From Mizuhopecten yessoensis (Eukaryota), in contig NW_018408904.1 of the NCBI RefSeq assembly GCF_002113885.1, positions 498,034 through 562,033 on the forward strand: a stretch of DNA of 64,000 nucleotides. The letters run 5' to 3'. The notes under the pieces are model-generated. The model saw only the letters and a program-made list of their open reading frames with translations, made no database searches and was not told the DNA's origin. Shown here in pieces: positions 2,927-58,130 of this stretch. The position numbers were made by a program, and so were the translations under genes. How positions within the stretch are numbered: the stretch's first letter is position 1; each line of letters begins with the position of its first letter.

Positions 2927-5900
2927 ATGCCAGAGACATTCAGCTTTGGTGTAGATCCAGTCACTACTCATGCTTGGAACAGGGATCGCTCGGGTAAGAA
3001 TACTTGTTAAGTCGCAATGAAATTATGTCTTTTAATTGTCATGTACCCATTCAAATGTTCTTAAAAATAATGTTCTAAGGGCAGTAAAGGATCAGTTTAT
3101 AATTGTTATACTTAAATTTTTCTGTTTCTACAGAATAGTCAAAGATTCAATTGTAATTTTACGACATAGTATGATAGTAAACATTGTTGGATACCAACAT
3201 TCGATTGTGCGACACTGACGATGGATGATGACTCCTACAGATCAGACAGTTTAGTTATAGGGGTAATAGATCCATGTTGTGAGCACCAACCCTGGGTATC
3301 TGACAATGGATGATGACTCCTACAGGTCAGACAGTTCAGTCTTAGGGGTAATATATCCATGTTGTGAACACTGATTCTGGGTATCTGACGATGGATGATG
3401 ACTCCTACAGGTCAGACAGTTCAGTTATAGGGGTAATATATCCATGTTGTGAGCACCAACCCTGGGTATCTGACAATGGATGATGACTTCTACAGGTCAG
3501 ACAGTTCAGTTATAGGAGTAATAGATCCATGTTGTGAACATAGCCATGTACATGTTTACAAGTATTTACAAATGTATTGTGTTTAAGTAAAAGGTCGTCT
3601 TTGAGAACTGGCTGCCAGGGTCAAAGATTAGTTGAAGATTGGAGTCTTAAAAGACTAATCCTCCTGAAATGGTTGTTAGTTTTTAACAGATTTGATGTAT
3701 AGTATCATCATGATGACAATTCCATGTTTTAATCTTTAAACAACTTCTAAATTAATGTACCCCTATAGTTTTATTTCCTAGATAAGACCATTGAGAATAC
3801 TGTAAGCTTAAGTGGTTGCCAAGGCTCCTTGCCCTCTTGTTATTGTTTTCGATATATTTGAATATTCCTTTTGTGATAGACAATTAAAATCAAATCAGTA
3901 GGAAAATTACATAGATTTTTCTTTTAGACAACTGAGTGAATTAATTGTGTTAAATACACCTATGAATAAAATCCGATATAACTTGTGAAGTAATTGGTTA
4001 ATACAAATCAAGCTTTAAGATTATTAGGTCTAGGGGTGTTTGGCTCCTATAGCTTGTTCCAGGATGTACCTAGACAGAGTTGGCTCCTATAGCTTGTTCC
4101 AGGATGTACCTAGACAGAGTTGGCTCCTATAGCTTGTTCCAGGATGTACCTAGTCAGAGTTGGCTCCAATAGCTTGTTCCAGGATGTACCTAGACAGTTG
4201 GCTCCTATAGCTTGTTCCAGGATGTACCTAGTCAGAGTTGGCTCCTATAGTTTGTTCCAGGATGTACCTAGACAGAGTTGGCTCCAATAGCTTGTTCCAG
4301 GATGTACCTATACAGAGTTGGCTCCTATAGCTTGGTACAGGATGTACCTAGTCAGAGTTGGCTCCAATAGCTTGTTCCAGGAGGTACCTAGACAGAGCTG
4401 GCTCCTAAAGCTTGTTCCAGGATGTTCCTAATCAGATTTGGCTCCTAAAGCTTTTCCAGGATGTACCTAGACAGAGGTGGCTCCTATAGCTTGTTCCAGG
4501 ATGTACCTAGACAGTTGGCTCCTATAGCTTGTTCCAGGATGTACCTAGTCAGAGCTGGCTCCTAAAGCTTGTTCCAGGATGTACCTAGACAGAGTTGGCT
4601 CCTATAGCTTGTTCCAGGATGTACCTAGACAGATGCATTATATAATTACACCTTGAACTAATGATTTTTCATCCTGTAATAGAGGTTGCTGTGTCCCTCA
4701 ATAATCATGAGGTGAAGGTATACAAGAAGACGGGCATCACTTACAATAACACTGCCACCCTGCAAGAACATGGTCAGCGAGTCACTAGTATCGACTGGGC
4801 ACAAAAAAGTAACAGCATAGTCACGTGTGGTGCTGTAAGTTCTATCTTAACGAATAATCCTATAAAACCTCACTACTGATGTTATTTGGAATAATCAAAA
4901 AGTTGGTTTAAGACTGAAAGAGATAATGATACCAAGGTCTGTTACAGTATACACTAGTAGCTATGGTACCATATCTGAATGCCATTTTTTATAAATAATT
5001 CTTTTTCCTGAAGAGCTAGATCGTGGCAATATATTTTCATTATTCATTTCTTAAATTGTCAGACTTACCTTTTTGTTACATTACCAAGTAAGGCCTTCAT
5101 TCTAATAAAAACTAATTTTGATATTCCAGGACAGGAATGCCTATGTTTGGACTCTCCAAGGTAATGGTCAATGGAAGCCAGTCCTTGTCATCTTAAGAAT
5201 CAACCGTGCTGCAACCTGTGTACGCTGGTCACCAGATGGTAAGAAACACCTTTTTCACTAAAACCTTCAAATTTGAATAATTGGCATTATTGTGACTTTG
5301 TTTTTCGAAATATTATTTCAGTCCACATATCAATAGGTCATTTAATTATCAGGACACCTAATATTACAGCTTAGAAATAAATATTTCTGTACAACACTTA
5401 AAACACGTTTCCATGAAAAATGTTCAGCTCATATGACTATTACTTGTTCCAGAGAACAAATTTGCAGTTGGGAGTGGTGCTCGTATCATCTCCATTTGCT
5501 ACTTCGAAGAAGAAAATAAGTGGTGGGTCAGTAAACACATCAAGAAGCCAATACGATCAACTGTTACATGGTAAGTAAACGATCAACTGTTACATGGTAA
5601 GCCAATATGATCACCTGTTACATGGTAAGCCAATAAGATCAACTGTTACATGGTAAGCCAATAAGATCAACTGTTACATGGTAGGCCAATACAATCAACT
5701 GTTACATGGTAAGCCAACACGATCAACTGTTACATGGTAATCAAACGATCAACTGTTACATGATAAGCCAATAAGATCAACTGTTACATGGTAAACCAAT
5801 AAGATCAACTGTTACATGATAAGCCAATACGATAAACTGTTACATGGTAAGCCAATAAGATCAACTGTTACATGGTAAGCCAACACGATCAACTGTTACA

Positions 5901-8900
5901 TGGTAAGCATAAGAAGAACAACTGTTACATGGTAAGCTAATAAGATCAACTGTTACATGGTAAGTAAACGATCAACTGTTACATGGTAAGCCAATAAGAT
6001 CAACTGTTACATGGTAAACCAATAAGATCAACTGTTACATGATAAGCCAATACGATAAACTGTTACATGGTAAGCCAATAAGATCAAATGTTACATGGTA
6101 AGCCAACACGATCAACTGTTACATGGTAAGCAAACGATCAACTGTTACATGATAAGCCAATAAGATCAACTGTTACATGGTAAACCAATAAGATCAACTG
6201 TTACATGGTAAGTCAACACGATCAACTGTTATATGGTAAGCAAACGATCAACTGTTACATGATAAGCCAATAAGATCAACTGTTACATGGTAAGCCAATA
6301 AGATCAACTGTTACATGGTAAGTCAATATGATCAACTGTTACATGGTAAGCCAATATGATCAACTGTTACATGGTAAGCCAATACGATCAACTGTTACAT
6401 GGTAAGCTAATGGAAACTTATGTAGTATAGTTAACTTTTCTACAGGCTTAGAAAATCCATCCACCCCTTCACCTATGTCCATGCCCAACTTGACATGAAA
6501 TCTTTATTTTCATCTGCCAGGCCTATTATCTCTGTCATCCAAATACATAAAAGTAACATAATATGTACAGATTTGTTTATTAAACATGACAATCAACATA
6601 CGTAATATTTCAGTATGAAGCCAATATTATGGTTGGTATCCATGTAATATTCTGGCAAGGACATTTGAACAATTACTAGGATGTATAAGTGAAGTCTAAT
6701 AGAATAAGCCTAATAGGGATGATTGGTAAGAAAATCTATAGAAGAATGCTCCTGAAAAGGGATGAAGGAATTTATCCTAATTTGGTATGGATCATCTCTA
6801 CAACAAATTCCACTTGTACTCCTGTTCAGTGATGCCAATTTTAACGGAAGATGGTGCAAATGATCATTGCCTAGCTATGTGCAAGTGATTTTTGCTTTTT
6901 TGAAATGATTCAAAATCCAGGACAGCTTCCCTATCCTCTGACTGGCAGAGACATTTTTAACCTTTTTTTCAAGTTTTTAATTTAAACGAGACAGCTTAAA
7001 ACATTCTCTACGTGTCTCGAGTATGTATTGTAAATTTTTGAGCTGTTTCAAAATGCAAGATAGTGGCCTGAACTTTGATTTTCTGAGAGATTTTGGAGTA
7101 ACAAGTCTGTCTAGATGCTATGCAATCTCAGTATAGCAGAATTAAAATAAAGTTGACAAACAACCAGGCATGACCCTGAGGAAACATTGAATAACAGTTT
7201 AGGGATACAGGCCCCTTGTGCCTTTTCACATTTGATGCGGAACTTCTCTCATTGTCAAGAGTACTGTAATTTTGTCTGCTATCTTTAGTACTGTGTAATG
7301 TTGTACTGGATTGTGTTTCAGCATTGACTGGCATCCAAACAACATTTTGTTGGCAGCAGGCTCCACTGACTTCAAGGCAAGGTAAGACCAATATATTACC
7401 AGATGTCATTTCATTTTCTCACATATCAATTATGTTAAAGCCCCACACTTCTGTTCATCGCCAAATTCCTTGTCTTGATGATAATTGAAGGTCTGTTAGC
7501 CTACATTTTTATTGATCATCATTGAAAAAAGGACCCTTAAGTTATTATTTTTCAGGAATTCATTGAAAGTTAGAAAGGATTAAAAATAGAAACAGATGCA
7601 TTTAATTTCTTTTCTGGATGATAATGCAAGTTCTGATTGCCTGATTGCTTTCGAAGTAAAACTTCATGTATGTGTTGGTTATCATTGAATAATAGCTACC
7701 TACATGTACCACTAGACTACCGTGCCTCCAACCTAGAACAGTTGAAATCCCCACTCGGTGACCACATACTGTATACTGGGTGAATTTAATGGCAGTGTTA
7801 TTTTAACGCTTTTCTTAGGAGGTTTCAATCCTTTGAAAATTTGTATATCTAAGCATTATTGTAAGGTCTACAATGTAGTTTAAAACTAAGGACAATAGGC
7901 AATAAGTCCCTGGGTCATAATATGGAAATAGTAGAGAGCTCCCATCCTGTATTATCCAATCGCTAGGCATGAAAAACAAGCACACATTATTTACCAAGAT
8001 AAGTCCAAGGTCGTACCCTGCCCTAGGTCTGAGGACCTCATTCTTTGGTCATAACATAGAAACAGTTGAGACTTCCACCTTAGCTATAACTGTCTATATA
8101 ATTTCTTAGCATGAAGAGATGACCACAATCATGAAATCAGGACTTGACCTGGGATCTGGGCCTGCCCCTGTGGATTTAGTCTCTGGGTCATAACATTTAT
8201 AAATTGCAAGAGACCCTTGAATAAATCTCATTTTCTTGAAGTTTCAATAATGTCCATTTTCTGAAATTTTGCTATGTCGTTGTTGCAGAGTTTTCTCAGG
8301 TTACATCAAGGACGTAGAACAGAAACCATCTGCCACTGCCTGGGGAGCCAAGATGACTCTCGGAAATCTCATGTGTGAATACTCCAACGGTGGAGGTAAG
8401 AATAGTTATCTGAGTACCCCAATGCTTAGCAACAATTTCCTCACAAGGAAGGTGTTGTAGATGTACTTTTCAAATAAATCACAATGATCAAAAATTGATA
8501 AATGTACACGTTTTTATGTTATGTTACTTCTTAATACTTACGGGAGATCTGGGTTGTTTTTAGTACCTTTAATGTTGTTATCTAAATCTCTTTCATATCT
8601 TTGTGCTTTTCACAGGTGGGTGGGTACATAATGTGTCCTTCTCCCCAAGTGGAGAGAAGCTGGCGTGGGTAGGACATGATGCTAGTGTGTCTGTCGCCAT
8701 GGCCGGTGGTGACAAGTAAGTATGACCTCAAAGTGTTTAAATACAAACTGAAAATAACTGATTGAAAACTTTGATTTTTTTTTTGTTATTAGTTACTCAC
8801 ATATGTCGATTGCTCCCACTTTTATTAAGATGAAGTTAAACGACGAAATCTTACCAAAATCATTAAAGTGGAAAATATAGGTTATAGTGATCTACATTTG

Positions 8901-11900
8901 ATATATGGTGTAGTACTTCTAAGAATGTACCAATATTTAAAGTTAAATCATTGTTCACTTGCTCAGGCTTGTGAAAATGTTTACATCTTGTTCCTAAAAT
9001 GTTATAACAGTGAACCAACTTCTGGCCAATACTACCGCTGTCCTTTACTCAGGTGATCTTTAAGGCCCTAGGTCTGTTGTAACAGTGAACCAACTTCTGG
9101 CCAATACCACCGCTGTCCTTTACTCGGGTGATCTTTAAGGCCCTAGGTCTGTTGTAACAGTGAACCAACTTCTGACCAATACTACTGCTGTCCTTTACTC
9201 AGGTGATCTTTAAGGCCTTGGGTATCTTGTCTTTTGTCAAATCACAACAAATTACAATTGTGTGACAGACTGTGTGGCCATAATGGCCCATGGACATCTT
9301 GTTAAGAAAGTTTCTCTAAAAATTATGAGCATTTTATTTTCAATTTTACAATTATAAGAATGATTGTCTCATAATTATTCAATAATTCACCAAAGAAAAT
9401 TACTGTTTGGTTCCATATGCAGTTTGTGGACATTGCAAAAGGCAGCTTTCTTAAGCTAGGGGTCACCTTTACACTTGATTGATAGGCATTCAGAGAGCTT
9501 TCCACTGAATGTAACAGTGATTGACCAAAATTATGTTTGAAACGTAACATCTCTTACAGAAACATTTTGGTACCCAAGATATAAAATACTGTCTATGGAA
9601 AAATCATGTGTTACACTGAAACACTACAACAGGGTTGTTTTAGTTAATGGAGACTCATCTGACAGGTTGTCTACTTTTAATATAACACTTTGAGGGATAA
9701 CAAAGATTATTTTTGTGGTAATTTCTGAAGATGGTTGTGCAATATTTAAATAGGTTTTAAAATCAATAACTTGATACACTAACTATTATTCCTTTTGCAT
9801 TTATTTAATTATTGTGGTTAGCCCAGGCATTGAGATGCATTTATTATATTTGTAGTAACTGTTTTATTTGTCTATCTAGTGTCGTCCCTTTATTCTGGTT
9901 TCTGATTATGTACTGTAAATGATGAACAGGAGACTGTTACGAGGAATCCTTTCTAACATTTTTCTAGTAATGCTTTTTTATCTTTTTATCTTTTTAGAAT
10001 TGCTGTTGTAAAAGGAAACTTCCTGCCTTTCATGAGTATGACTTGGGTGACGGAGAACAGCATGGTTTGTGTGGTAAGTCTGCAGAAATAGATTACTTCC
10101 TGCATTTCATGAGTATGACTTGGGCGACGGGGAACAGCATGGTTTGTGTGGTTAGTAAGCAGAGATAGATCACTTCCCGCCTTTCATGAGTATGACTTGG
10201 GTGATGGGGAACAGCATGGTTTGTGTGGTTAGTAAGCAGAGATAGATCACTTCCTGACTTTCATGAGTATGACTTGGGTGATGGGGAACAGCATGGTTTG
10301 TGTGGTTAGTAAGCAGAGATAGATCACTTCCTGCCTTTCATGAGTATGACTTGGGTGACGGGGAACAGCATGGTTTGTGTGGTTAGTCAGCAGAGATAGA
10401 TCACTTCCTGCCTTTCATGAGTATGACTTGGGTGACGGAGAACAGCATGGTTTGTGTGGTAAGTCAGCAGAGATAGATCACTTTCTGCAGGATAAGGTTA
10501 CCAGTCACACTTTACAGAACAAGATGGTAGCAGCGATGGTACACACAAATCATATCTTTTCTATGACAATACAACTTTCATTTTAACAAATAATTTTACA
10601 TTTATAAGGCCTTGTGATATATATTTTGTTTTATTATTCCCATCACTATGGTATATTGTCTCCAGGGTTACGATTGCTGCCCAAAACTTTTCAGCCACAG
10701 TGACGATGGACAAGTAACCTTCATCACCGACCTTGACATTCCACAGGAGAAGGACCAAATGACAATGAGGTCAGAAGATTTATGAAATTCTTGTGTTTAG
10801 TGTTTTCATCCTGATCCATAAAGCTTCAGTTTGTTAATTTCTGTCCTAACTTGATAAATGGGCAGTGTTTCAGCACACACCATTTACATATCTGTCCTGT
10901 CCTTTACTTTGATAAATGGGCAGTGTTTCACAGCACACACCATTTACATATCTGTCCTGTCCTAACTTGATAAATGGGCATAGTGTTTCAGCACACACCA
11001 TTTACATATCTGTCCTGTCCTAACTTGATAAATGGTCAGTGTTTCAGCACACACCATTTACATATCTGTCCTGTTCTAACTTATAACACATCAGATCATC
11101 TTTTAAGAAATGAATATTTTAACAACCAAAAGGTAAATGATAGCAAAACTGAAGCGAATCAAAAGTTTAGTGAAGATTAAAGGAGTATACGATAGATCTG
11201 ATTGGCTGTTGGTATTTGACATTTACTCTTTTAAGAAAGTATGGTTTTGAACACTTGATATATCCCCCGTTTGGAGAAGTGTATACAAGCATTATCCTGT
11301 CTACACATTGGCCTGTTCACAGCTTCCTAATTAAAGTGTTAAACCTTTCATGAAACTTACAAAAGTATTCCTGACATCACAAGGAAATAAATATTTGCTT
11401 ATCTGCAAGCTCGATTTTCACACGTCGTATAAGATAATTTAGTAGATACTATCAACCTAACTCCCATGATGTTGTTGGCGAGTGTATATGTACTGTTTGG
11501 GGAACTCTTGTTATAGTTAGATTAACCTAAAAGATGTGTCTGATCAGTAGATATTTAACGAGATAGCATTCACTGGCTTCTGACAGGTTGTTAAAGTGGA
11601 AAACAAAATCAGTTTCCGTTTGTTTCTGTGTTAAACTTGTTCTGTGTTTGTCTTTCAGTGCCATGAATCGTTTCCGTCAGATGGACAAGACAGGAACAGC
11701 AGAAAACACAGGGGAAATAAAAACCAAGCATCAAAACACCATTACGTAAGTGACAGGTTTGGATTATAAGTACAGGAAAAATAAACTTCCTCCCTATCAA
11801 AGCCACCTATTCTCTTAGATTTGCCAAAACAATAGTTAGGGTGGCACATTAACATTTTCCTTGTATGAATTAATGAATCTAAATATATCAGATTACTTTT

Positions 11901-13401: not shown

Positions 13402-14238
13402 TAGCTCACCTGATCCGCTGTCCGTCCGGCATCAATATTTTACTTTAAACAACTTCTTCTCAATAACCAAAAGGCTTATGATGATGATATTTGGCCAGAA
13501 GCAAACTGGGTTGAAGGGCTACCAAGTTTGTTAAAATAAATGACCTTCACCTATTTTCAAGGTCACAGGCGTCAATGTCTTAAAAAATCTTTAAACAACT
13601 TCTTCTGAATAACTAAGAGACCTAGGATAATGATATTTGGCCAGTAACATGCTAGGATGAATGACTTTTATATATAGTCAAGGTCACAGGGGTCAAATAT
13701 GTTAAAAACTTTTAAACAACTTCTTCTCAATAACCGAAAACCCTAGGATGATGCTATTTGGCCAGTAGCATGCTGTGATGAATGACCTTGACCAGCTTTG
13801 AAGGTCACAGGGGTCAAATGTTTTAAAATCTTCAAACCACTTCTTAATAACCAAAAGGCCCAGGGTACTGATATTGGGCCTGTAGCATGCTAGGATAAAT
13901 GACCTTGACCCACTGTCAAGGTCACTGGGGTCAGATGTCTTAAAATCTTCTAACGACTTCTTCTCAATAACCAAAAGGCTTATGATGATGATATTTGGCC
14001 AGAAGCAAACTGGGTTGAAGGGCTACCAAGTTTGTTCAAATGACTGACCTTGACCCACTTTCAACCTAATGTCCTTGTTCGACATTCAAGGACACAGGCT
14101 TCATGTTTAAATCTTTTAATAGGTTCTTGTGAATCGAACCCTGCTATTCTGCCTGTAGCTGTATTTTAGTCTACTTTTAAGATTACAAGTGTGAGATTAA
14201 TACCAGGTGAGCGATGCAGGACCATTGGGCCTCTTGTT
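13402..14238 (+). mobile_element. Non-autonomous Helentron-associated (HINE/DINE-1-like) element with internal ~110-125-bp tandem repeats
   Basis: 5' TAGCTCACCTG, a short GTCC microsatellite, internal repeats (AAACAACTTCTTCTCAATAACC...TGACCTT...AAGGTCA), 3' CAGGTGAGC inverted repeat, then a palindrome-like AGGACCATTGGGCCT and CTTGTT, in a T-rich site. Confidence 0.75.
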
Positions 14239-22539: not shown

Positions 22540-22836
22540 TCCTTCCTCGGCCTCCGGTACACCTCCTCAGCCAGACTAGTGCCCCTCACTCTTCTTCCTG
22601 TTCAGCCAGACCAACCTTCCTCACTCCTCCTCCTCGACCTCCCCATAGGCCTCCTCTGCCAGACTAGTGCCCCTCACTCTTCTTCCTGTCCAGCCAGACC
22701 AACCTTCCTCACTCCTCCTCGACCTCCCCGTAGGCCTCCTCTGCCAGACTAGTGCCCCTCACTCTTCTTCCTGTCCAGCCAGACCAACCTTCCTCACTCC
22801 TCCTCCTCGACCTCCCCATAGGCCTCCTCTGCCAGA
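22540..22836 (-). repeat. 85-88-bp tandem repeat containing the last eEF2K codons, stop codon and proximal 3'UTR (3 copies plus a degenerate partial copy)
   Basis: Minus-strand unit TCTGGCAGAGGAGGCCTAYGGGGAGGTCGAGGAGGAG(GAG)TGAGGAAGG...CACTAG, boundaries at 22836, 22748, 22663 and 22575. Confidence 0.93.
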
Positions 22837-25308
22837 GCGAAGTATTTATTGGCCAGTCTTCCCTTCATTGCAGCCATTGCTGCTTCTGCAGCCTCATTGT
22901 ATAAGTCCCCTACAATACAGAAGATTTCTATCAATGTTTCATTATATCTGACTTGGCCACTATTGGTGTTGCATTATCTTAGTTATTTATCACCATCATT
23001 ATTAACATCACCATAAACAGTTAGCCTCTTAACACTCTTATAATTTTTAAACTATGCAACTTATATGAACATAACATAGCAAGGAAGATAATGTTCTAAA
23101 AATATCTTTCCGCAACAGCTAGTGTGAAGTATACAGGGTGTATGCACAGAAAACTTTGCATTGTTTACAAGATTGTGATTTGTCCTTATTGACACAATTC
23201 AGCATTTTCCATTTAAAAGAGAGCTAGACAAACTGAAACATTGATCTATGTACCTGCAGTTGATGGATCCTTGTCCAGCCCATGGCCCCCTGTATGGAGC
23301 AGTTCTGCCTTCTTGGCTATGAGGATATGGATAGGGTCCTCCATTGCACAGCTGTACTCGCCTCCTTCATCATGGTTGTCGGTCTCCACAGCCCGTTCAT
23401 ACCAGGACAGTGAATCCTCCCACGATATCGACCTACAACACAACAGGTAACAAGCCCTTGCTCAGTGTGGACATTTTACTTTCCTATCATAAACTATTTA
23501 TTCTGTCTCGGCTTCAATAGGGTAACAGATTGAAAAAGTCAGTGTATACAGGGTTAGGATAACAAATGTGCAACCTCTTATGATGTAGGTTCATCATTAA
23601 TGACCAAGTGAAGTCATAAGAGAGCCAGAAGTCATTCTTCAATGAACAATAATAGTTATTCTTCAAGGAGTAGTCATTCTTCAATGAACAATAAAAGTTA
23701 TTCTTCATGGAGTAATAGAGTTGTTTAATGAGCATTTCAAAATGTCTAACAAAACCGTACCGATCAATATATTACTGTGGATAATTAGTTGATTTGTTTG
23801 TGTACTTCCTTTTGAGCTATATCTGTAGGTTTTATTCACAAATACAATAATTCCCTTATGAGAGGATGTTATTTCAATATTGACATTAAATCAATCTATG
23901 GAATTAATATAATAGTTGCTTAAGATTTAAATTTGTAAATGAGTCTTCTTACGATTTAAAGCAAAAAAAAGTTCTCTGCAAAATGAAGTGATTTGCATTA
24001 TATCTTTACATTATTTTTGTTTCTTTGTATAAATGTACTTCGTAAATAATGCAGACCTTTTTGTGCCAAGGCCATAGCCAGTCTCGAATGCTTTAGCCAT
24101 GTAGATCATGGCTTCCCGGTCCCCAGCCTCAGCGGCCTCCACCATGTAGTCAACTCCTATGTTAAAGTTCTCATCACTCTTCTGTAAAACAAAACAATAA
24201 AAAATTAGATTAGGGAGGAAACTTAATACAAATATAAGACTCAACTAGAACACTGACAGGTCAGTAAGGGCCCTGTCTTGTGGCAATATATCCCCCATAA
24301 TCATCAAGAAGCAATCTGCCCATATAGCTGAGCTTGACGTTTGACATTTGGACTTCAAAAAGAATCGCAAGTTCATTTTACATGTACTATGATGTGAGTC
24401 TTGTTTCCTTCCACCTCCATATTTGCTGGGCTAACAGAAATGTAAATACCGGTGCAATACTCATTTGTTAGCTTTGATTTGTTTTATTTCACCTCCTCCA
24501 TCAAGAGCCAGGGTCAAAGTCAGAGATCCACTATGTCTTTGACCATTGCACCCAAATGACCTTGACCATTAACCCAGTGACCCTGAACTTTGGTCAATTG
24601 ACTTATTCTTTAATTCCGACCAACTTTGCTTCTTGATATCATAACAAAATGTTCATCAGTGACAAATACAAAACTTGACCTTGACCCTTTGGACCCCGTA
24701 ACCTGGACCTAATGTCAGTTGACTCTATGTTAAGTTCTGAACAACATTGCTTCAAAGTGTCATAGCGAAATGTTCACCAGTGAAAAGATACAAAATTTAA
24801 CCTTGACCTTTGACCCAATGACCTTGACCTTCAGTCAGTTGACTCCTTGTTTAATTCTGATCAACTTTGCTTCATCATGTCATAACAAAATGTTCATCAG
24901 TGAAAAGATGCAAAATTTGACCTTGACCTTTGAATATAATGACCTTGACCCTTTGCCTCGACTTTTTACCTCGGCGTGTCTCTTTGTTTAATTCCGAACA
25001 ACTTTGCTTCATAATGTCATAGCGAAATGTTCACCAGTGAAAAGCTACAAAATTTGACCTTGACCCCTGACACGATGACCTTGACTTTTGGTCAGTTGAC
25101 TCCTTGTTTTATTCTGATCAACTTTGCTTCATAATGTCATAACAAAATGTTCATCGGTGAAAAGATGTAAAATTTGACCTTGACCTTTGAACCTAATGAC
25201 CTTGACTTTTTACCTCAATGTGTATTTTTGTGAACTAAACATCTTGACCAAGTTTCATGTACATCGGTCAATAAATACCAAAGTTATCGGCCAGGAACAA
25301 AATTTATG

Positions 25309-25339
<31 letters not shown>

Positions 25340-28300: not shown

Positions 28301-31300
28301 TAGTCATATTTGGTACCAGCATGCATTATGAATGCTTTACTGGTGGTAACCTTATTTTGTACCAGCATGCATTCTGAATGCTTTACATTAGGTTACCTTA
28401 TTTTGTTCCAGCATGCATTCTGAATGCTTTACATTAGGTAACCTTATTTTATACCAGCATGCATTATCAATGCTTTACTGCTGGTAGTCTTGTAAAGCTG
28501 GTAGTCTTGTTTAACTGGAAAAGGAACCAAGAACAAACATGATTTCACTCTAGGCTAGTCTGCTACTTTTCTTAAAGGAAAGTCAGTTGGTGATTGAGTA
28601 ATATCGTAATGTTTTTGACATAATGATAATGAGAACTTCAGCGTGATATAAAGGTACTGTACCTCTACTGTCATGGAGGATTGGCTGTCTGATTTGTCTG
28701 ATCTCTCCGATTCACTGATGAACCTCATGCGGCTGACCCTCACCCTCGGCGATGGACTGTCAATGGACATACCCTCATCAGTTTCCTCATCTATCGCTGA
28801 GTCACTCAGCACAGACGAGTTGGATCGCTGGCGCTCCAAGAAACGAGTAATATCAATCTTTGTGTCAGGAGATGAGAGAGAAATACAGCGTTCCTCGTCC
28901 CCTCTTAACCTTGTTTTCATCATCGACTTTCTCTGTAACAAGTCCAAGGTTATATAAAGTCATAAATTGTATATGGATGATTGCTAAAATTTCTCTTACA
29001 ATAAAACAATACCCTGTAATTATGTACAATTTCAAGTAAATTCTGATTGGTCACTTAAACAGAGGACTAATCAGATTTTTTTTTACTGAATTAGTCATGT
29101 CATTTGCCATTTTGATATGAAGAATTAAAGGCACAGTAGCCTAGTGGTAGGACGCCGGGCTCATGACTGAAGAGTTGCGGGTTCGAGTCACGTTATGGCA
29201 CTGTGTTGTATCTTTAAACCAGACACTTTACTTCGCTTGTTCCAGTCTACGCAGCTGTAAATGAGTATGTGGTTGGGCATTGCTAGAATTGTTGAATGCT
29301 AGCTGTGAGCGCTGAAATGGCAGTACCGGCTGTATGCTCCCCAGGGAGTTGACATATGAGATATTGGCTGGTTGCAAAAGCCCTATAACCACAGATAATA
29401 ATTTGTGAAGCGCTTTGAGACGACCTACAAATTAGGTTGTAATAAAGCAGTTTACAAGAACCTCAAATTATTATTATTACTGTTATTTTGTGAACTTCTG
29501 ACACACAATTGTCATGAAATGGTTGAGACACTTCAAATATTACAGGAAAAAGAAACTAAAAGAATGGTAACACAGAGAAGTACTTACCTGATTGCGGAGA
29601 ATGTCTTTGTGAGAGTCGAGTTCCGTGGGTGAGAGATCAAACTCAGTGAGATCAAGACTCCTGCAGATGTCATTACAGATGTGTGAGTGGAAGAAGAGGG
29701 CCATGCCCTTAGCCCCAAGGTTGCCATCCCCATACTCATTGCCCTCAATAGTGTGTATCTGAGGGTCAGTGTAAAGGTCACCGACTCCCTGTATGTCCAC
29801 AACGATCAGCATGTGACCAGATCGCTCAAACGTGAAGTGACTGAGGGCCTGTTAAATGATTCGAAGTATCCAGATATCAAGAATAAAGAATAAACAAGAG
29901 ATCCAAAGATCTCGACCACATAGCTTTTGTTTTTATAGACAAATATCATAACTTGGATTGATCTTTCTGCCGTAATGCAATTTTCAACACATGTGACAAT
30001 TGTGATCTTGAAAGTGTGCATAAATCATGCATTTGTAAAAAACAAACTCTGCAACCCAGCAAACTACAGAATATATATACCAAGGTACTAACTAAAGGCC
30101 TTATAATTCTATAGAATAACTTTTAACACATTTGACCTCTATCAGCCTTTAAAGTGGATAAAAAGTCATTCACTTTTAAGAACACTCGATAGCCTTCCAT
30201 TTCAGCAAGCTACATGACAAATATCCTTACTGGGTACTCTAAATAAGGCTCAAAGTATGTTTTAAAAACAAATTTAACACCAATAACAGCAATAAGCCTG
30301 AAAGTGGGTCAAGGTTATTTATTAGATAACAAATAAGTTCCACATATAAATGCACAATCTTTATCACATCAACCTACCTGTGGAGTGTAACGCAGGGAGT
30401 CATCCACAAACCCAGAGTTGGAGTTTCTTTATCACACATCAACCTACCTGTGGAGTGTAACGCAGGGAGTCATCCACAAACCCAGAGTTGGAGTTTCTTT
30501 ATCACACATCAACCTACCTGTGGAGTGTAACGCAGGGAGTCATCCACAAACCCAGAGTTGGAGTTTCTTTATCACACATCAACCTACCTGTGGAGTGTAA
30601 CGCAGGGAGTCATCCACAAACCCAGAGTTGGAGTTTCTTTATCACACATCAACCTACCTGTGGAGTGTAACGCAGGGAGTCATCCACAAACCCAGAGTTG
30701 GAGTTTCTTTATCACACATCAACCTACCTGTGGAGTGTAACGCAGGGAGTCATCCACAAACCCAGAGTTGGAGTTTCTTTATCACACATCAACCTACCTG
30801 TGGAGTGTAACGCAGGGAGTCATCCACAAACCCAGAGTTGGAGTTTCTTTATCACACATCAACCTACCTGTGGAGTGTAACGCAGGGAGTCATCCACAAA
30901 CCCAGAGTTGGAGTTTCTTTATCACACATCAACCTACCTGTGGAGTGTAACGCAGGGAGTCATCCACAAACCCAGAGTTGGAGTTTCTTTATCACACATC
31001 AACCTACCTGTGGAGTGTAACGCAGGGAGTCATCCACAAACCCAGAGTTGGAGTTTCTTTATCACACATCAACCTACCTGTGGAGTGTAACGCAGGGAGT
31101 CATCCACAAACCCAGAGTTGGAGTTTCTTTATCACACATCAACCTACCTGTGGAGTGTAACGCAGGGAGTCATCCACAAACCCAGAGTTGGAGTTTCTTT
31201 ATCACACATCAACCTACCTGTGGAGTGTAACGCAGGGAGTCATCCACAAACCCAGAGTTGGAGTTTCTTTATCACACATCAACCTACCTGTGGAGTGTAA

Positions 31301-34300: not shown

Positions 34301-37300
34301 TGGAGTGTAACGCAGGGAGTCATCCACAAACCCAGAGTTGGAGTTTCTTTATCACACATCAACCTACCTGTGGAGTGTAACGCAGGGAGTCATCCACAAA
34401 CCCAGAGTTGGAGTTTCTTTATCACACATCAACCTACCTGTGGAGTGTAACGCAGGGAGTCATCCACAAACCCAGAGTTGGAGTTTCTTTATCACACATC
34501 AACCTACCTGTGGAGTGTAACGCAGGGAGTCATCCACAAACCCAGAGTTGGAGTTTCTTTATCACACATCAACCTACCTGTGGAGTGTAACGCAGGGAGT
34601 CATCCACAAACCCAGAGTTGGAGTTTCTTTATCACACATCAACCTACCTGTGGAGTGTAACGCAGGGAGTCATCCACAAACCCAGAGTTGGAGTTTCTTT
34701 ATCACACATCAACCTACCTGTGGAGTGTAACGCAGGGAGTCATCCACAAACCCAGAGTTGGAGTTTCTTTATCACACATCAACCTACCTGTGGAGTGTAA
34801 CGCAGGGAGTCATCCACAAACCCAGAGTTGGAGTTTCTTTATCACACATCAACCTACCTGTGGAGTGTAACGCAGGGAGTCGTCCACAAACCCAGAGTTG
34901 GAGTTTCTTTATCACACATCAACCTACCTGTGGAGTGTAACGCAGGGAGTCGTCCACAAACCCAGAGTTGGAGTTGTACTTGACATAATGACCTTCAATG
35001 AAGTGCTCAAGGTGATACAAGGGAGAACCTGGTCTGTCCCTAAATTCTAAGATGTACATCTGGAATATGTCCACCTGGATAAAACAATGGTAACATAGGT
35101 CAATCAACATCAGACAGGTCCTTTTTTATAATGCACATATACAGGTAGTGTACATGTGACAGAAACGCTAGGATGGCTGAAGATTAAAGGGGAATAACTA
35201 TATATATTCAGATGTCAAATTTTAGACCCAAATTCAACATATAACATTCATCTTCCCAACCTTTATAAGTAAAAAAAGTTTGGTAAATACAAGTGTAAAA
35301 GCAAAGAAGCTAGGCTCCAGACAAACTCAAGTAAAACATTTAACAAAAGGTCAAAGCTCTATCAAAAATACATGTAAAATTCTGCAATGCCAACTTATGT
35401 AGCAATTTTCACCATCATATGTGTTTTAGTAAAAGCAGGCGAGGGATTAAGGGCACAGTTAATGGACAAATGGACAGATACCATAGGGTATATCACGATA
35501 TGATCCATCACCAAGGGGCATGTAGAAAGGTATATCAACATATTTTTTTTGTATCAATTAGCAGAAGCAAAATAGTCCAACTATTGTGGTTGTACTGTAG
35601 TACATACTGCAATGTAAGGTACCTTTTTTGGAGGTCTGTGTCTGTTGTACTCCTCTGCCCAAACCTTGGCATCCATCTGAAGTTTGACATCCTGGAAATA
35701 CACATCTCTGTCAACTGTCTGTATGTAGTGTTTGGCCACATAATTTCCACTGTGATTCCAGTCCGGGTTCTTCAAGAAATGAGACAGTTTCTTCCTGAAA
35801 TAGATCACATGTATATGATATATGTAATAAATCTGGGTGCATGTACACTTTACAAGATACAGATATCACTATGAAAAAGTTTTTATTTGTAATGGAACTG
35901 GACTGGGTCGATCATTGGCAATCAGATAGCTCAATTGGTCATCGATCTAGAGTTTGGAGGGTCCCGAGTTTGAAGCCCAGTCAGGCAGTTGCTTTTCTCT
36001 TTCTCCTGTTACAAAATTGGAAAGTTTGCCAACCCTTGATTCAAGTATTGGGTGTACGCTCGGCAAGGGGATAGCCAAATCTAGGTTGTAAATAGTGATG
36101 TCTTCAGGGGCGAAGACTTAGAAAATAGAGGGAGGAACGTAACGAAAACTGCACTGGGTCGATCGTCGGCGACCAGGTGGCTCAATTGGTAGAGCGTTCA
36201 TCTAGAGTTTGGTGGGTCCTGAATTTGAATCCCAGTCTGGCCCTACATTTCTCTTTCTCCTGTTAAACAGTTTTCAATCCTCATCTCAAAACAATTACTG
36301 CTATACATGTAGTTGGAAGTTTACGATAAAAATAATATCTTTATTTTCAACATACAAATGTATGTCCAATACAAAGAAAAAGGGGTTGCGACAGGACAAT
36401 TGGGGAGTGGAACTTGACTCCAATGACTTCCGTATTGCAAAACTTTGGTATACACACACAAGACACCAAGGGTATGATGATGAGTACTTCAAATCAAGTG
36501 ATCCTACAATTCTTGTTTTACTCAGAAAAATGTAACAAACTCAAACATTTCGTTGTTTTTTCCCCCCTATATAAACATACAGCAGACACTCATCAATTCC
36601 GTTATATTACAGACAGATTAAGTTGGTTTGATCAGAGATTTGTTTGTGTTTTTATCAATTCTAAACAGACAGTAAAGAGTTAGTCATACATAAACAAGAG
36701 CGATTATATCTATATTACTCCTGACCCTTCAATTTCATAAATTAATCCAAATTTACACAATCAAAAACTTAATTAAGATGTTTACAAAACTTTAACTTTA
36801 TGACAAATACTACAGGATTGAATTTAGAAAAAGAAATTTAATACAATTACATTATCTGTAAAGTAGGGGCCAGATACTATACACATGCATTTATAAGCTA
36901 CATGACCTATATTTAGAGACTTAAAACATGAAATCAATATGCTTGCAACTTTCAGATTACCATATTTATACAAGGTCTAAACCATCTCACATATGTCATC
37001 CTATGTCACATGTTGCACAAGTTATGATTCACACAAATTCCTCATTTTCTGATAAATAGTAAAGCAGGATTTTCTACCAACAGGGCAGTTAAAGTGATTT
37101 TACCATAAAGACAAAAACGTAATCATTATACTTCATCTATATGTTAGTCTGTCTTACTGGTTTAAAAACATCATATGACAAAGAAACAAAACATCAAGTC
37201 TCCCTAGCATGATTGACTGTCCCTCACATAATTGAATATCCCTCACAAGATCAATTTACCCTTCCGAGTATCTATCTCATGGCCTCTTTTGTAGATCTCT

Positions 37301-50330: not shown

Positions 50331-50572
50331 ACAGTGTATTTGGTATGAAAATAGCAGATGCATTCCGACAATTCTATTCCGAATGAGAAATTAAATATAA
50401 TTTTGATATTTCCAATCCAAAAACATATCAAGAGGTCTTTTATAATTACATTTTTTTAGGATATTATATGAATAAACAAAATCTAAAATTTAACATATCC
50501 ACAAATACGACGAACATAATAAAATACTATTTAAGAAATAAAGAGCCTATATACATCGGTATTTGAATGTGA

Positions 50573-50653
50573 GGTAGCGTGGCCGAGTGGTCTAAGGCGC
50601 TGGTTTTAGGCACCAGTCTCATTGAGGCGTGGGTTCGAATCCCACCGCTGCCA
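50573..50653 (+). tRNA. tRNA-Leu(UAG)
   Basis: GGTAGCG/CGCTGCC acceptor stem plus discriminator A; D-arm TGGCCGAGTGGTCTAAGGC; anticodon stem CTGGT/ACCAG with loop TT-TAG-GC; long variable arm; T-arm GTGGGTTCGAATCCCAC; oligo-T terminator near 50660. Confidence 0.95.
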
Positions 50654-51782: not shown

Positions 51783-52545
51783 GTCAGTGGTGACCTGTCT
51801 TTTTCAATAAGTAGTCACTGGTGACCTCTCTTTATCAATAAGTAGTCACTGGTGACCTCTCTTTATCAATAAGTAGTCACTGGTGAGTTTTCCTTTATCA
51901 CTTGTCATTCGTGATCTCAACTTCAATAGTAAGTAGTCAATGGTTAGCTCCTTTTTCTATTAGTAAGTGGTCAATCAATGGCTAGCTGACCTTTATTTGT
52001 TAAGCAGGTCACTAGTGAGCTCTCCTTTATTGGGCGGGTTTCATTGGTAAGCTTTTCTTTGTCAATCATCACTGGTGAGCTCTCCTTTATCAGTTAGTTG
52101 TCACTGGTGAGCTCCTCTTTATCAGTTGTCACAAGCAAGCTCTCCTTTATCAGTTAGTTGTCACTGGTGAGCTCCTCTTTATCAGTTGTCACAAGCGAGG
52201 TCTCCTTTATCAGTTAGTTGTCACTAGTGAGCTCCCCTTTATTAGTTCTAACTAGTGAGCTCTCCTTTATCAGTTAGTTGTCACTGGTGAGTTCTCCTTT
52301 ATCAATTAGTTGTCACTGGTGAGCTCCCCTTTATCAGTTGTCACAAGCAAGCTCTTCTTTATCAGATCTCACTAGTGAATTCTTCTTTATCAGTTAGTTG
52401 TCACTATTGAGCTCCTCTATCATTCTACACTCACTTTTATCAGCAGTCACTGGTGAGCTCTTCTTAATCAGTTAAAGCTGTAATTTTTGTACTCTCTATC
52501 AGTCTATGGTCTCTGTTGAGCTCTCCTTTATCAGCCTATAGTCAC
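51783..52545. repeat. Degenerate ~28-32-bp tandem repeat
   Basis: TCACTGGTGAGCTCTCCTTTATCAGTTAGTTG and variants. Confidence 0.85.
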
Positions 52546-54000
52546 TGGCAAGTCTCTATTTACAGCATTTCTTTTATAAAAGTTTGCTTAATGGCTTATA
52601 GACATTATATGCCAATTTATTTATTTTCATTTTTTATTAAAGACCTGTCCTTTTATATATTTTTCATTATGTTACCAGGTCATTGGTCTGGCCTATTATT
52701 TTTGCAGAAGATGTTTAAAAAATTTAACACTCTTGTGATCTTAATTGTAGGTAAAGGTCATCTAGTAGCGGTGGTTTTAGGCCAGGTACATACTGGCGGC
52801 CAGGTACATACTGGCCATGTATCACCACTCAGGACCTCCTGGTTATTCAGAAGAAGTGGAATAAAAGGTTTTTACATATTTGACTCCTGTGACCTTGAAA
52901 GTAGGTCAAGGTTATTTATTTGAAGAAACTTTATAGGACTCTGTCCAAGATACCAACTAGCCAAATATCATGGCCCTAGGTCCTCCAGTTCTTAAGAAGA
53001 TATCATTCATAGAAAAAAATAATGGAAGACGGAAAACACACATGATAAGCTGAACTGGCACAAAAATTTAACCTTTGACCTTACCTGATTATTATATGTA
53101 AAAACACTCGGACTTTCTAAAGCATATCAGAGTATCACAACTCTAGACCTTACAAATATATATATTTTGACACCAGCCAATGTTCAAAGTTGACCTCAAC
53201 ATGATATGCTACATATTTGTAAAACTGATTTACAAAAAAAAAACTATTGTACTTCTATCTTTCTTTTAAGAAGAAATTTTACAAAATCAACATGAATATT
53301 GAACAAATACTGTAAAATATAGAGAACAAGAGCTGTAGTAGAATAGCATAGCTCGTCTATTGCCAACACTTGTGAATCTAATAAGCCATCATCACTTGTT
53401 GTGTTATTTGGGTTTTTTTAAACCTATGTCAGTAACTTTTTTTTTATGGTTTTGGGCCTTTGCTGTGCCTTACAGAGTATATTGATGCTAGTGTTTGTCT
53501 TTACATGTCAAAATAATTTAAAATGAACTTACTATTTAATTTGTTCACTTTCATAATAAGTCTCTTTCTTTCTTTTTGTTGTTGTTGACATATTTGATCC
53601 CAATGACCCCACCCCCTCTGGCCCGGCTCCTGCATGGGGGTTATATCAAAAATCAGAAAGTGTTGTGCACTTTTTGATACATATATGTACCATGTGTAAA
53701 AGTTTCAAGTTCCTACCTCAAACATTGTAGAAAAAGTTAACCCCTTAAGTACCCCCCCCCCCCCCCCCCCACCCCCATCATCATTTGCTAAAATGAATTG
53801 CTGTAAAATGTAGAACTCGATCATTATAATGTTTGATTTGATATGCTATTAAGACTGAATTTGTTTTGAAAATATTTGACCCCATCCCTCTGGCCCGCCC
53901 CCTGGGGGGTCATGTTCAAAATCCAAAAGTGTTGTGCACTTCTCCATACATATATGTTCCATGTCTAAAAGTTCCTNTCGGCCTCTAGGGGTTATGTCAA

Positions 54001-55328
54001 CAAAAGGCCCAATGGGCCTGAATCGCTCACCTGGTATTAATCTCACACTTGTTATCTCAAAAGTGGACTAAAATACAACTACAGGCAGAATATCATTGTT
54101 TGATTAATAAGAACCTATTAAAAGATTTAAACATATGACACCCGTGACCTTGAATGTCGAACAAGGAAATTAGTTTTAACAGAGTTTATAGTCTTCCTAC
54201 CTAGCATGCTTCTAGCAAAATATCATTACCCTGGACTTTTTGGTTATACAGACCAAATCATTTAAAGATTTAAACATATATTGACCACTGTGACTCTGAA
54301 TATGGGCGAAGGTCATTCATTTGAACAAACTTGGTAGCCCTTCATCCCAGCATGTTAATGCCCAAATGTCATCACCCTAGGCCTTTTGGTTATTCAGAAG
54401 AAGTTATTTAAATGTTTTTAACATATTTGACCCCAGAGACCTTGGATATGATTCAAGGTCATTCATATGAACAAACTTGGTAGCCCTTCATCCAAGCATG
54501 TTAATGCCCAAATGTCATCACCCTAGGCCTCTTGGTTGTTCTTCAGAAGTTGTTTTAAGATTATAACATATTTGACCCCTGTGACCTTGAAAATGGATAA
54601 AGGTCATTTATTTGAACAAACTTGGTAGCCCTTCATCCCAGCATGTTACTGGCCAAATATCATCACCCTAGGCCTCTCGGTTATTCAGAAGTTGTTTAAA
54701 GGTTTAAACATATTTGACCCCTGTGACCTTGAATATCAGTCAAGGTAATTTATTTGAACAAACTTGGTAGCCCTTCATCCCAGCATGTTAATGGTCAAAT
54801 ATCATCACCCTAGGCCTCTTGGTTATTCAGAAAAATTTGTTTTAAGATTTTAACATATTTGACCCCTGTGACCTTGAATATCGGTCAAGGTCATTTATTT
54901 GAACAAACTTGGTAGCCCTTCATCACAGCATGTTACTGGTCAAATATCATCACCCTATTCAGAAAAAGTTGTTTTAAGATTTTAACATATTTGACCCCTA
55001 TGACCTTGAAAATGGATAAAGGTCATTTATTTGAACAAACTTGGTAGCCCTTCATTTCAGAATGTTACTGGCCAAATAGCATCACCCTAGGCCTCTCGGT
55101 TATTCAAAAGAAGTTGTTTAAAGGATTAAACATATTGGACCCCTGTGACCTTGAATATAAGTCAAGGTAATTTATTTGAACAAACTTGGTAGCCCTTCAT
55201 CCCAGCATGTTACTGGCCAAATATCATCACCCTAGGCCTCTTGCTTGCCCAAAAACCTTAACCAAGTGGGACCCTGACGCTGTAAGTACTGCCTATAGCT
55301 CCCCCTGTTCTTCGAATAGACAAGTTAA
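54001..55328 (-). mobile_element. HINE-like element, same family as 13402-14238, with ~8 internal ~123-bp repeats
   Basis: AGGCCCAATGGGCCT...CGCTCACCTGGTATTAATCTCACACTTG is the reverse complement of the right end of the 13402-14238 element; tandem TTTGAACAAACTTGGTAGCCCTTCATCCCAGCATG units. Confidence 0.75.
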
Positions 55329-56495
55329 AAATACAGGTAACATATATAATATGTATTTTTGAAATCTCAAACTGAAGAACACAAATCTCCGACAGAAAAT
55401 TATTCCACAACAGAAACATAAGGTATCTGACTATATAATGTTTTCTTATCAGTTATATGATAATCTGCATTTCGGATGTTTATTCTTTAACTTAGCTCAT
55501 CCATAAAACATTTCTTTTGTAATTTTCATACCCATATGAATGCCCAATGTAATTAAAATTACATATTCACATCACTCCCGCTTACTGACATGTTCCACTT
55601 AACATATCAGTAAATGGGAGAGATGTGAAGATATAATTTTACTAAGATTGATGAATGCCATGACATGCATATACGTTTCCCAATACTTTTGCTATGGAAT
55701 ACATATGTTCATATATTATTACCCAACCCTTAGACATTAAAATAAATCACTCATGTTTTATGTCATATCTAAATTTAGAAAAAAAAGATGTTCCAGAGAA
55801 CATGCAGCAAAAATCAATTAATTAAAATAGAATATTTTTATTTTTATTTGAAATAAATATATGTCAAGTAACATTGTTTTTGTCTATTTTTTTCTTATAA
55901 TCGATTAAGACATCTATAAACATTGAGGAAATATCGTATAATGGTTGTGCATTCAATCACACTAACTTTACTCGTTTGTGGAAAACCCCTTAGGGATAGC
56001 ATGTTCCAAGAATGATTTTTTTGGTTAAAGTAGCAGAAATAAGTGAATTTATGTTTTGTATTTGTTATTTATGTAGTGTTGTGTAGGACTTGATAAATTG
56101 TTAACACTGGTGACTGGACCATGCAAATGCTGTTTCCGAAACCTAACAAAATCAGCAGAATCCTTGCAAATTGATGTTCAAGTCATATAGATGTGTTGAA
56201 ATTGATAGGTGTTAAAAGAAAAAGTGTTGTATAGAAAAATTTTGAATTTTAAAATTAAATAAGGCAATAATCAATTGCGATAAGAAATGAAGTAATTTTG
56301 AGTTAGCATGAATGTGTGGGTACACCAATTTTTAAGAAGCCATTTAAACAAATGAGATAGCAAAGTGATCTTGGCATCAACCCTCAGAAGATCTTCATTA
56401 CTATTATGCAAGTTTGATCTATTCCTTTTCTTTCTCTTTTCTATTGGATTGATAGTCTGATTTTCAACAGTAGAAGCATCTTGTGGTAACTTTTG

Positions 56496-57140
56496 AACAA
56501 GAGGCCCAATGGGCCAGCATCGCTCACCTGGTATTAATCTCACACTTGTAATCTTAAAAGTGGACTAAAATACAGCTACAGGCAGAATATCAGTGTTTGA
56601 TTCATAAGAACCTATGAAAGGTTTAAACATATGACATCCGTGACCTTGAATGTCGAACAAGGACATTTAAGTCATTAGGTTGAAAAGAGTTTATAGTCTT
56701 CCAACCCAGCATGCTTCTGGCAAAATATCATTACCTTGGACCTTTTGGTTATACAGAACAAATCATTTAAAGATTTAAACATATATTGACCACTGTGACC
56801 TTAATTACGGGCGAAGGTCATTCACTTGGTAGTCTTTCAGAAGTCGTTTAAAGGTTTTCAATATATTTGACCCCTGTGACCTTTAAAGTGGGTCCAGGTC
56901 ATTCATTTGCACAAACTTGGTAGTCCTTTATCCTAGCATGCTACAGGCCAAATATCATCACCCTAGGCCTTTTGGTTATTGAGAAGAAGTTGTTTCAAGA
57001 TTTTAACATATTTGACCCGTGACCTTGAATATCAGTCAAGGTCATTTATTTGAACAAAATTGGTAGCCCTTCATCCCAGCATGTTACTGGCTCCGCTCCA
57101 CAGCATAAGTTCACTTGGCCCTTCGAGCCAGGTGAGCTAA
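56496..57140 (-). mobile_element. HINE-like element, same family, shorter copy
   Basis: AACAAGAGGCCCAATGGGCC...CGCTCACCTGGTATTAATCTCACACTTG at the left end and GCCAGGTGAGCTAA at the right end. Confidence 0.75.
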
Positions 57141-57910
57141 TAAATATCATACAGCTGGGTTTGAGACTTCTTGTTTATTTCTTTAGCAATAGCGATAACA
57201 AACTTGTGCTGTCAACATCCAAGATGGCTACCTCGTGGCCATCTTGTTTTCCTGTCTGTTCAAAAATGAAACATGCAAAACTATGGACCATGGGGAACTA
57301 CATATGAAATTTGAGAATGATTTATTCAGTGCTTTTTGAGAAATAGCAATAACAGAAATTATTGAACGACCGATGGACAGAAGGCGATTTTAGCCCACTT
57401 TCTGATGAGTGTGGGCTAAAAAGTTGGCAGACTGATGACGGATGCTACGACGGATGCTGCACCATACCATACACTCCGGGGCTCAGTGCATGGTGAGTTA
57501 ATGAAATGACTTAAAGCTGAGAGTCTTATACACTGAATTTTATTCAACATTTGAATGATGGTGATAATGTTAGTACACAATGAATTGGTGGTTTTTGTCA
57601 TGATTTAATGAACCAAATAAATGGAAGCCTTATAATATCCTGAAATTAGACTACTGAATAGTTGTACAGTACCTTCTACAACTTATATCCAAAGATTATG
57701 ATTTTACAATAATTAACTGTCGAATATGACAATGAAAATAAGTAACAGAGATGACATTTTTTGCCACTAAGATGAGAATAAATCTCTAGATGTGGCACTA
57801 AACAATATTAACTACAACAATAATTCAACACAAAGTCAGACAACAACAAAATCCAATTGTCCTGATGATCAGCTGATTTAAAAAAAAAAATATCACAATA
57901 ACAATAGCCT

Positions 57911-58130
57911 GTGTGGAGTCCATCAATGAGTTTAACAACATCCACCTTATGAGCTGTAGGGGTCATACTGTTTGTAGGTTTACCACATGCCATGAGTCCA
58001 TCAGAGTTTAATAGCATCCACTGTATAGTGCTGTAGGAGTCATACTGTCTAAAGTTTTACCACATGTGTGAAGTCCATTATCAAAGAGATTAATAGCGTC
58101 CACTGTATGAGCTGTACGAGTCATACTGTC
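57911..58130 (-). repeat. Diverged ~80-bp triplication of the RRM gene's last codons, stop codon and 3'UTR start
   Basis: Plus-strand TTAATAGCGTCCACTGTATGAGCTGTACGAGTCATACTGT (coding copy, 58090-58129) recurs at ~58008-58048 and ~57932-57971. Confidence 0.85.

Follow-up and report, generated by a model that had tools for sequence, protein, structure and literature searches.

Tandem arrays at the 3′ ends of exons in three neighbouring genes

We analyzed a 64-kb stretch of DNA from the scallop Mizuhopecten yessoensis (hereafter, the window), in which ARPC1, eEF2K and a Gly/Asn-rich neighbour carry tandem arrays anchored on the ends of their coding exons. Using Tandem Repeats Finder (TRF), we called 35 separate arrays, which together make up 27% of the length of the window. 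Five of them begin within a coding exon and reiterate the 3′ boundary of that exon, which is a splice donor in three cases and a stop codon in two. These five had been pointed out in a previous reading of the same DNA (the original prediction), and both TRF and our own inspection of the sequence found all of them in place. The in-frame stops that a ribosome would meet if the donors were read through are also as previously written, namely TG|G TAA and GTA AGT CTG CAG AAA TAG in ARPC1 and GTA GGT TGA in eEF2K.

ARPC1 lies on the forward strand and contains two of the donor arrays. Its coding exon 4 (5453..5570), which matches ARPC1A in the PDB with E=3e-19 and is delimited by RNA joints 5237>5452 and 5569>7321, ends in ACATG|gtaag. 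From position 5545 to 6411, a 28-bp unit consisting of the last 26 nt of the exon plus GT is repeated 31.3 times. GGTAAG is kept in 21 of the 31 copies and the donor is altered in the remaining 10, with AAG as a microhomology at the unit joint. Regarding coding exon 8 (9998..10073, with RNA joints 8715>9998 and 10072>10665), it ends in |gtaagt and enters an array of 6.1 copies of a 77-bp unit (10018..10488), to which the exon contributes 56 nt and the intron 21 nt. Here the donor reads GTAAGT in copies 1 and 6 and GTTAGT in copies 2-5. The unit is flanked by a near-repeat, ACTTCCTGC in the exon and ACTTTCTGC in the intron, whose two members lie 77 bp apart.

The third donor array is found in eEF2K, on the reverse strand. 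We located coding exon 4 of this gene (34928..35074, VDIFQMY...LRYTPQ|gtaggt) by tblastn of the NCBI M. yessoensis eEF2K protein (P0166) and by its similarity to eEF2K in the PDB (E=1e-19). Between positions 30358 and 34975, a 70-bp unit with 47 nt of exon and 23 nt of intron is repeated 66.0 times, and this array alone accounts for 4.6 kb of a 5.1-kb intron. CAG|GTAGGT is retained in every one of the 66 copies (CAGGTAGGT in 66 of 66 units). Because 63 of the 66 units are identical letter by letter, the assembled copy number is doubtful. P0166 maps exon by exon on the window, and its joint ...RYTPQ|ALSHF... corresponds to the first donor of the array. Each 70-nt unit also presents a pyrimidine-rich stretch and CAG immediately before GTAGGT (CCACAG|GTAGGT in all units). 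With this arrangement, splicing could theoretically excise the units one by one as 70-nt mini-introns, each time restoring an identical donor (recursive splicing).

The same gene ends in one of the two stop arrays. Its last coding exon (22794..22909, reverse strand, placed by mapping of P0166) closes with ALAEEAYGEVEEEE and the stop codon, and an 88-bp unit comprising the last 13 codons, TGA and about 45 nt of the 3′ untranslated region (UTR) is present in 3.2 copies at 22562..22836. Copy 2 of this array finishes in EEE followed by a stop, like NCBI isoform X2 (685 aa, ...GEVEEE), and isoform X1 has the ending of copy 1. Isoform X2 could be explained either by an allele that is one unit shorter or by an 85-nt GT..AG ‘intron’ as long as one repeat, and perhaps it is an artefact that the stop array caused in the annotation.

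The second stop array belongs to the Gly/Asn-rich gene, also on the reverse strand. The last coding exon (58088..58135) ends in GGQYDSYSSYSGRY and the stop, and an array of 2.7 copies of a 77-bp unit, 80% alike (57916..58130), starts 5 nt inside this exon and carries the TAA. The original prediction had described this gene as an RRM gene. Its last exon and stop agree with the gene end annotated for its Ylistrum balloti orthologue (L026 4251), but Pfam and PDB searches with the gene gave no match that would verify the RRM label. At 62375-62469 (reverse strand), the Gly/Asn-rich exon additionally contains in-frame 15- and 21-bp coding repeats (GSFGGNQ / GFGNQ...), which end 2 nt before the donor of that exon.

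ARPC1 is spliced at the first donor of both arrays

We compared positions 5000-10999 of the window with one raw-read RNA-seq run, one set of RNA contigs and two sets of DNA contigs from other studies, and counted RNA joints from at least three reads. The first donor of the 28-bp array (5570) was joined to exon 5 in 136 cases, and the first donor of the 77-bp array (10073) to exon 9 in 177. No joint supported by at least three reads of the RNA-seq run departed from an internal copy of either array. The only other joints came from the last copies, with 11 reads for the 28-bp array and 19 for the 77-bp array. In each array the last copy equals the first one over a stretch of 26 nt and 56 nt, respectively, and the longest left arms among these reads measured 25 nt and 54 nt. 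Since no such read passes the stretch that is identical to the first copy, the last-copy joints are the product of mapping ambiguity and give no sign of the use of a distal donor. Within both arrays, RNA depth was close to zero. ARPC1 is hence spliced at the most upstream donor of each array, and the downstream pseudo-sites are silent. That the first copy is the working donor, as the original prediction had it, is borne out by reads in ARPC1 and agrees with annotation and homology in eEF2K.

Regarding the DNA, the contigs of two other individuals, from independent studies, break off where each ARPC1 array begins and start again where it ends, and inside the arrays word depth reaches 4-5x. Given that the contigs of both studies hold the two edges of each array and that word depth is raised in between, the ARPC1 arrays exist in other individuals too. 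These short-read contigs collapse within the arrays, and copy number or length polymorphism is unreadable from them.

The same comparison gave two minor observations in ARPC1. In intron 5, at around 7699-7729, the contigs of the two other individuals break, with unrelated loose ends and a word depth of about 5x, which hints at an insertion polymorphism or at the border of an interspersed repeat. Besides, the RNA sample differed from the assembly at three coding positions, 5505 (C>T, in all reads), 10037 (T>C) and 10692 (C>T, both in about half of the reads), and these differences look like ordinary polymorphism.

Relation to known boundary minisatellites

Minisatellites that cross exon boundaries consist of head-to-tail units of 10-200 bp. 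A genuine exon-intron junction lies in the first (or last) of these units, monomers further downstream repeat its splice signal, and the boundaries concerned can be acceptors as well as donors. The three donor arrays comprise 31 units of 28 bp, 6 of 77 bp and 66 of 70 bp. The junction lies inside the first monomer according to RNA joints in ARPC1 (donors 5570 and 10073) and according to NCBI protein mapping and PDB homology in eEF2K (donor 34928). All three repeat the splice signal in later monomers, and an acceptor boundary is affected in the HMBS gene, outside the window (see below). The arrays therefore belong to a known class, that of the minisatellites whose first monomer crosses an exon-intron boundary, and their number is roughly that expected from the repeat load of this genome. 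The original prediction had been aware of no description of such arrays. Both the architecture and the choice of the first donor have in fact been described in human genes and in amphioxus, and our literature search on exon-boundary minisatellites found no description from a mollusc.

In the human F7 gene, the first monomer of a 37-bp minisatellite crosses the boundary between exon 7 and intervening sequence 7 (IVS7) (Borensztajn et al. 2006, PMC1557585). The downstream pseudo-sites are identical and functional yet silent, and selection runs 5′ to 3′, so that the most upstream site wins (PMC1557585). The same architecture is found in IFI6 (6-16), CBS IVS13, LMNB2 and PDGF intron 4 (PMC1557585). 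The scallop arrays resemble this group in having a first monomer placed over the boundary and identical pseudo-donors after the authentic one, of which the upstream-most is used in ARPC1. There are also differences. The human examples are isolated cases in a minisatellite-poor genome, whereas 3 of the 25 donors of the scallop window are affected and several more nearby. The exon part of the scallop units is as long as 56 nt, in contrast to 4 nt in F7, and copies number up to 66, a figure that is unverified. Moreover, the F7 precedent is experimentally established, while first-donor choice in the scallop is shown by RNA reads in ARPC1 and indicated by annotation and homology in eEF2K.

A second parallel is provided by the ‘mirage’ minisatellites of amphioxus (Adh3, globins, TnC and PGBD5), which lie at exon-intron boundaries of both kinds with normal splicing (PMC3087553, PMC3902484, citing Canestro et al. 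2002). Like the scallop arrays, these repeats cross boundaries and leave splicing undisturbed, in the highly polymorphic genome of a marine invertebrate in the case of amphioxus. Edge copies that escape homogenisation are also described in amphioxus (PMC3087553), and in ARPC1 exon 8 the edge copies 1 and 6, with the ancestral GTAAGT, likewise differ from copies 2-5. Amphioxus belongs to another phylum and is reported to have 5′ and 3′ boundaries affected side by side, whereas only exon 3′ ends are hit in this scallop region. Finally, the Rogers model, as cited in PMC3087553, explains intron gain through the tandem duplication of a segment containing AGGT, including tandem-array introns. As in that model, tandem duplication yields extra splice signals here. 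Unlike in the model, no new intron or exon arises, and the copies remain within an existing intron.

Boundary arrays in the flank, in HMBS and in other bivalves

As an unselected control we took the 200 kb directly upstream of the window on the same contig. TRF called 69 arrays in this flank (22% of its length), which gives 104 arrays and 23% for the 264 kb of window plus flank. Exons of the flank were recognized by donor-motif scoring and homology, a procedure that favours donors over acceptors; a codon-usage classifier was too weak for short exons, and an open reading frame (ORF) extension screen of the array flanks had low specificity and missed two of the five known arrays. We detected two clear donor arrays and a possible one. 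A 112-bp unit present in 5 copies starts in an exon of IRE1 that ends in |gtaagt, and a PH+SMP (TEX2-like) gene has 27 copies of a 66-bp unit, the first of which begins within the exon ...NIPPPPTDRLW|gtaagt, with AAGTTAG at the unit joint. The possible one is a 61-bp x 2 array in what may be INTS15. For the TEX2-like gene, the matches to PH and SMP were only sub-threshold, making the family assignment weak, and an Atlas search with its exon returned no match. A probable exon of the TEX2-like gene, together with its acceptor and its donor, is contained whole in a 538-bp tandem duplication of two near-identical copies about 30 kb upstream of the window (L017 8013-8939, G000:C5577), and the 66-bp donor array follows the second copy only.

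Acceptors were also considered. As the original prediction had stated, no array in the window spans an acceptor: none of the 26 acceptors lies inside an array, the nearest being 5 nt off. We saw no acceptor array in the 200-kb flank either, in a screen that detects acceptors less readily than donors. Elsewhere in the M. yessoensis genome, however, HMBS contains a 68-bp array in which every unit repeats the 3′ splice site ...tgtatacag|GA before exon EGGCSVPVSVITEVRDNQ. Two HMBS loci (L022 and L023) showed no arrays, and the acceptor array is located at the next exon (L024 1559-3016, G000:C5114), directly upstream of the exon for the cofactor-binding GGCSVP motif (EGGCSVP). A restriction to exon 3′ ends thus does not hold for the genome as a whole, and the earlier suggestion that only the donor polarity is tolerable is not supported in view of this array and of the amphioxus mirages, which affect both kinds of boundary (PMC3087553).

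We then extended the comparison to the eEF2K loci of the scallops Pecten maximus (L025) and Ylistrum balloti (L026), of Mytilus (mussel) and of Pinctada (pearl oyster); for ARPC1 it was limited to the part of the Y. balloti gene that adjoins eEF2K. Tandem repeats make up 34% of the eEF2K locus in P. maximus and 29% in Y. balloti, and 10-11% in the mussel and the pearl oyster; the two scallop relatives match M. yessoensis in repeat richness. In Y. balloti, the donor of eEF2K exon 4 bears another array, of 21 bp x 21 (ACAG|GTAGGTGAAGACTAATT), with an ACAG microhomology at the unit joint. The loci of P. maximus, Mytilus and Pinctada present no array at this donor, which is single in each of them. 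A 17-bp Mytilus repeat was considered and rejected as a donor array, given that it starts 6 nt past the donor and excludes it. At the ARPC1 exon-8 donor, Y. balloti carries at least eight copies of a 49-bp unit that is contained within the 77-bp one found in M. yessoensis. Stop regions are affected as well. That of eEF2K in P. maximus shows a two-copy duplication of a unit of about 45 bp at the equivalent place, and the stop duplication of the Gly/Asn-rich gene is common to M. yessoensis and Y. balloti. Since the two species share the latter in diverged form, comparison of their sequences indicates that it is old.

Origin of the arrays

The arrays are probably ordinary minisatellites that were seeded by chance across exon 3′ boundaries, in a genome of which about one quarter is minisatellite. 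A short segment between microhomologies of a few bases would be duplicated by replication slippage or template switching, and the duplicated pair would then expand and be homogenised by unequal exchange. The joints between units carry short direct repeats (AAG, ACTTCCTGC/ACTTTCTGC, AAGTTAG and ACAG), which fits slippage or template switching at microhomologies. When the duplicated segment is made of an exon tail and its 5′ splice site, the extra copies would all land in the intron, where they would be harmless since splicing would choose the donor that lies furthest upstream and adjoins the genuine exon, as experiments established for F7 and as the reads show for ARPC1. When it is made of the last codons and the stop, the ribosome would halt at the first stop and the copies would turn into 3′ UTR. 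Purifying selection would preserve the first copy and purge the arrays that disrupt exons, and the visible remainder would be boundary-anchored arrays and in-frame coding repeats. Later copies do show decay, from GTAAGT to GTTAGT in four exon-8 copies and in 10 of the 31 donors of the 28-bp array, and the exon-internal arrays of the window have periods of 15 and 21 bp only, both multiples of three. In a genome so rich in repeats, the additional copies give the impression of by-products without a use, and the arrays have no demonstrated function.

To put numbers on chance seeding, we let every array count as a single seed, as long as its unit, that falls at random into the window with arrays collapsed (48.8 kb, containing 25 donors, 26 acceptors and 3 stops). 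This model predicts 0.89 donors in arrays, and 3 were seen (P=0.058). For acceptors the expectation was 0.93 and none was seen (P=0.39), and for stops it was 0.11, with 2 seen (P=0.005). In the flank, 1.5-2.6 donor arrays were expected, taking 2.6% per junction and a rough guess of 60-100 donors. By comparing this range with the two clear arrays and the possible one, we can conclude that donor arrays in the unselected 200 kb are at chance level. Extended to the whole genome, with about 200,000 donors assumed, random seeding predicts around 5,600 donor arrays.

Several observations weigh against chance seeding and against the harmlessness of the copies. For donors and stops taken together, the expectation in the window was 1.0 and 5 were seen (P=0.003). 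Over the 264 kb, the tally is of 5-6 donor arrays and 2 stop arrays, that is, 7-8 arrays at exon 3′ ends and no acceptor array, and the two-sided P for the bias between donors and acceptors is about 0.01-0.06. The donors of eEF2K exon 4 and ARPC1 exon 8 carry arrays in both M. yessoensis and Y. balloti, whose units differ in length, and such a coincidence at two donors in two genera would be rare if arrays arose independently at about 3% per junction. As for splicing, nonsense-mediated decay (NMD) could mask transcripts spliced at distal donors, and in eEF2K the use of the first donor is deduced from annotation and homology, not from reads.

The excess in the window, the lack of acceptor arrays over the 264 kb and the differently built arrays at the same donors of two species are what speaks for a second explanation, which we consider rather unlikely. 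According to it, exon 3′ ends would be preferred seeds, owing to transcription- or R-loop-linked breaks with template switching, or preferred survivors anchored on a conserved first copy, and donors would be enriched over acceptors. Nevertheless, the window had been picked for this very property, and at P=0.003 about 40 of the 15,400 windows of the genome are expected to reach it by chance. The unselected flank stands at expectation, acceptor arrays do exist, as HMBS illustrates, and the acceptor screen was less sensitive than the donor screen. In addition, the eEF2K donor of P. maximus is free of an array, and the shared arrays may be merely old and remodelled: those at the common donors are either old arrays that have been remodelled or marks of duplication-prone sites. 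There may be a quantitative bias toward donors over acceptors. With a modest excess in the window and the flank at chance, a donor-biased duplication process may or may not be at work. It also seems doubtful to us that exon 3′ ends of scallops are true hot spots or long-term refuges, at which arrays would recur or persist for more than 100 million years with remodelled units at orthologous donors.

A regulatory role of the arrays is much less plausible. In one version, productive transcripts and those containing a premature termination codon (PTC) and destined for NMD would be made in proportions fixed by copy number; in another, the CAG|GTAGGT units of eEF2K would serve as recursive splice points through which the 4.6-kb array is removed stepwise. 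The pyrimidine-rich tail ending in CAG right before GTAGGT in every eEF2K unit would suit the latter, and any use of a distal donor would yield an early stop, as the former requires. Yet ARPC1 showed neither distal-donor joints nor intronic RNA signal. The earlier proposal that copy number could tune productive versus NMD splicing is hence not supported, as the use of distal donors was not detected and RNA depth in the ARPC1 arrays is about zero. Recursion cannot be general either, because in ARPC1 no AG precedes the donor of the units. Furthermore, the presence of the arrays and their unit vary among related scallops whose proteins are conserved, and the human precedents are mostly silent (PMC1557585). 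Finally, it is scarcely conceivable that the arrays were misbuilt by a short-read assembler, in spite of the 63 identical units of eEF2K and of the collapse of other individuals’ short-read contigs inside arrays, given that both edges of both ARPC1 arrays and raised word depth recur in two independent studies and that comparable arrays lie at the same donors in the assembly of another species, so that only the copy numbers are doubtful.

Implications for annotation and splice-site choice

If the arrays are ordinary minisatellites seeded by chance, thousands of decoy donors confront scallop gene models and RNA-seq aligners. A unit-sized ‘intron’ or an allele that is one unit shorter can then pose as an isoform, of which eEF2K X1/X2 look like an example, and the copy numbers of such arrays are unreliable in short-read assemblies. 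The arrays would also constitute natural experiments on the choice of the 5′ splice site, with as many as 66 identical donors following one another in an invertebrate gene, extending the F7 model. Should donors instead be preferred seeds, the arrays would bear on intron growth and on the links between transcription, splicing and genome instability. If exon 3′ ends were hot spots or refuges, this would speak for a duplication process linked to transcription or splicing, or for selection retaining arrays that are anchored on a conserved first copy.

A dispersed minisatellite family

Apart from the boundary arrays, a minisatellite family with units of 120-160 bp (TGACCTTGACC...) was found at several unrelated places, three of them in the window (13536-14007, 24557-25206 and 54121-55243) and the others at L001 7065-7732 and L012 6297-6993. 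Given this distribution, the TGACCTTGACC family is probably carried by a transposable element.

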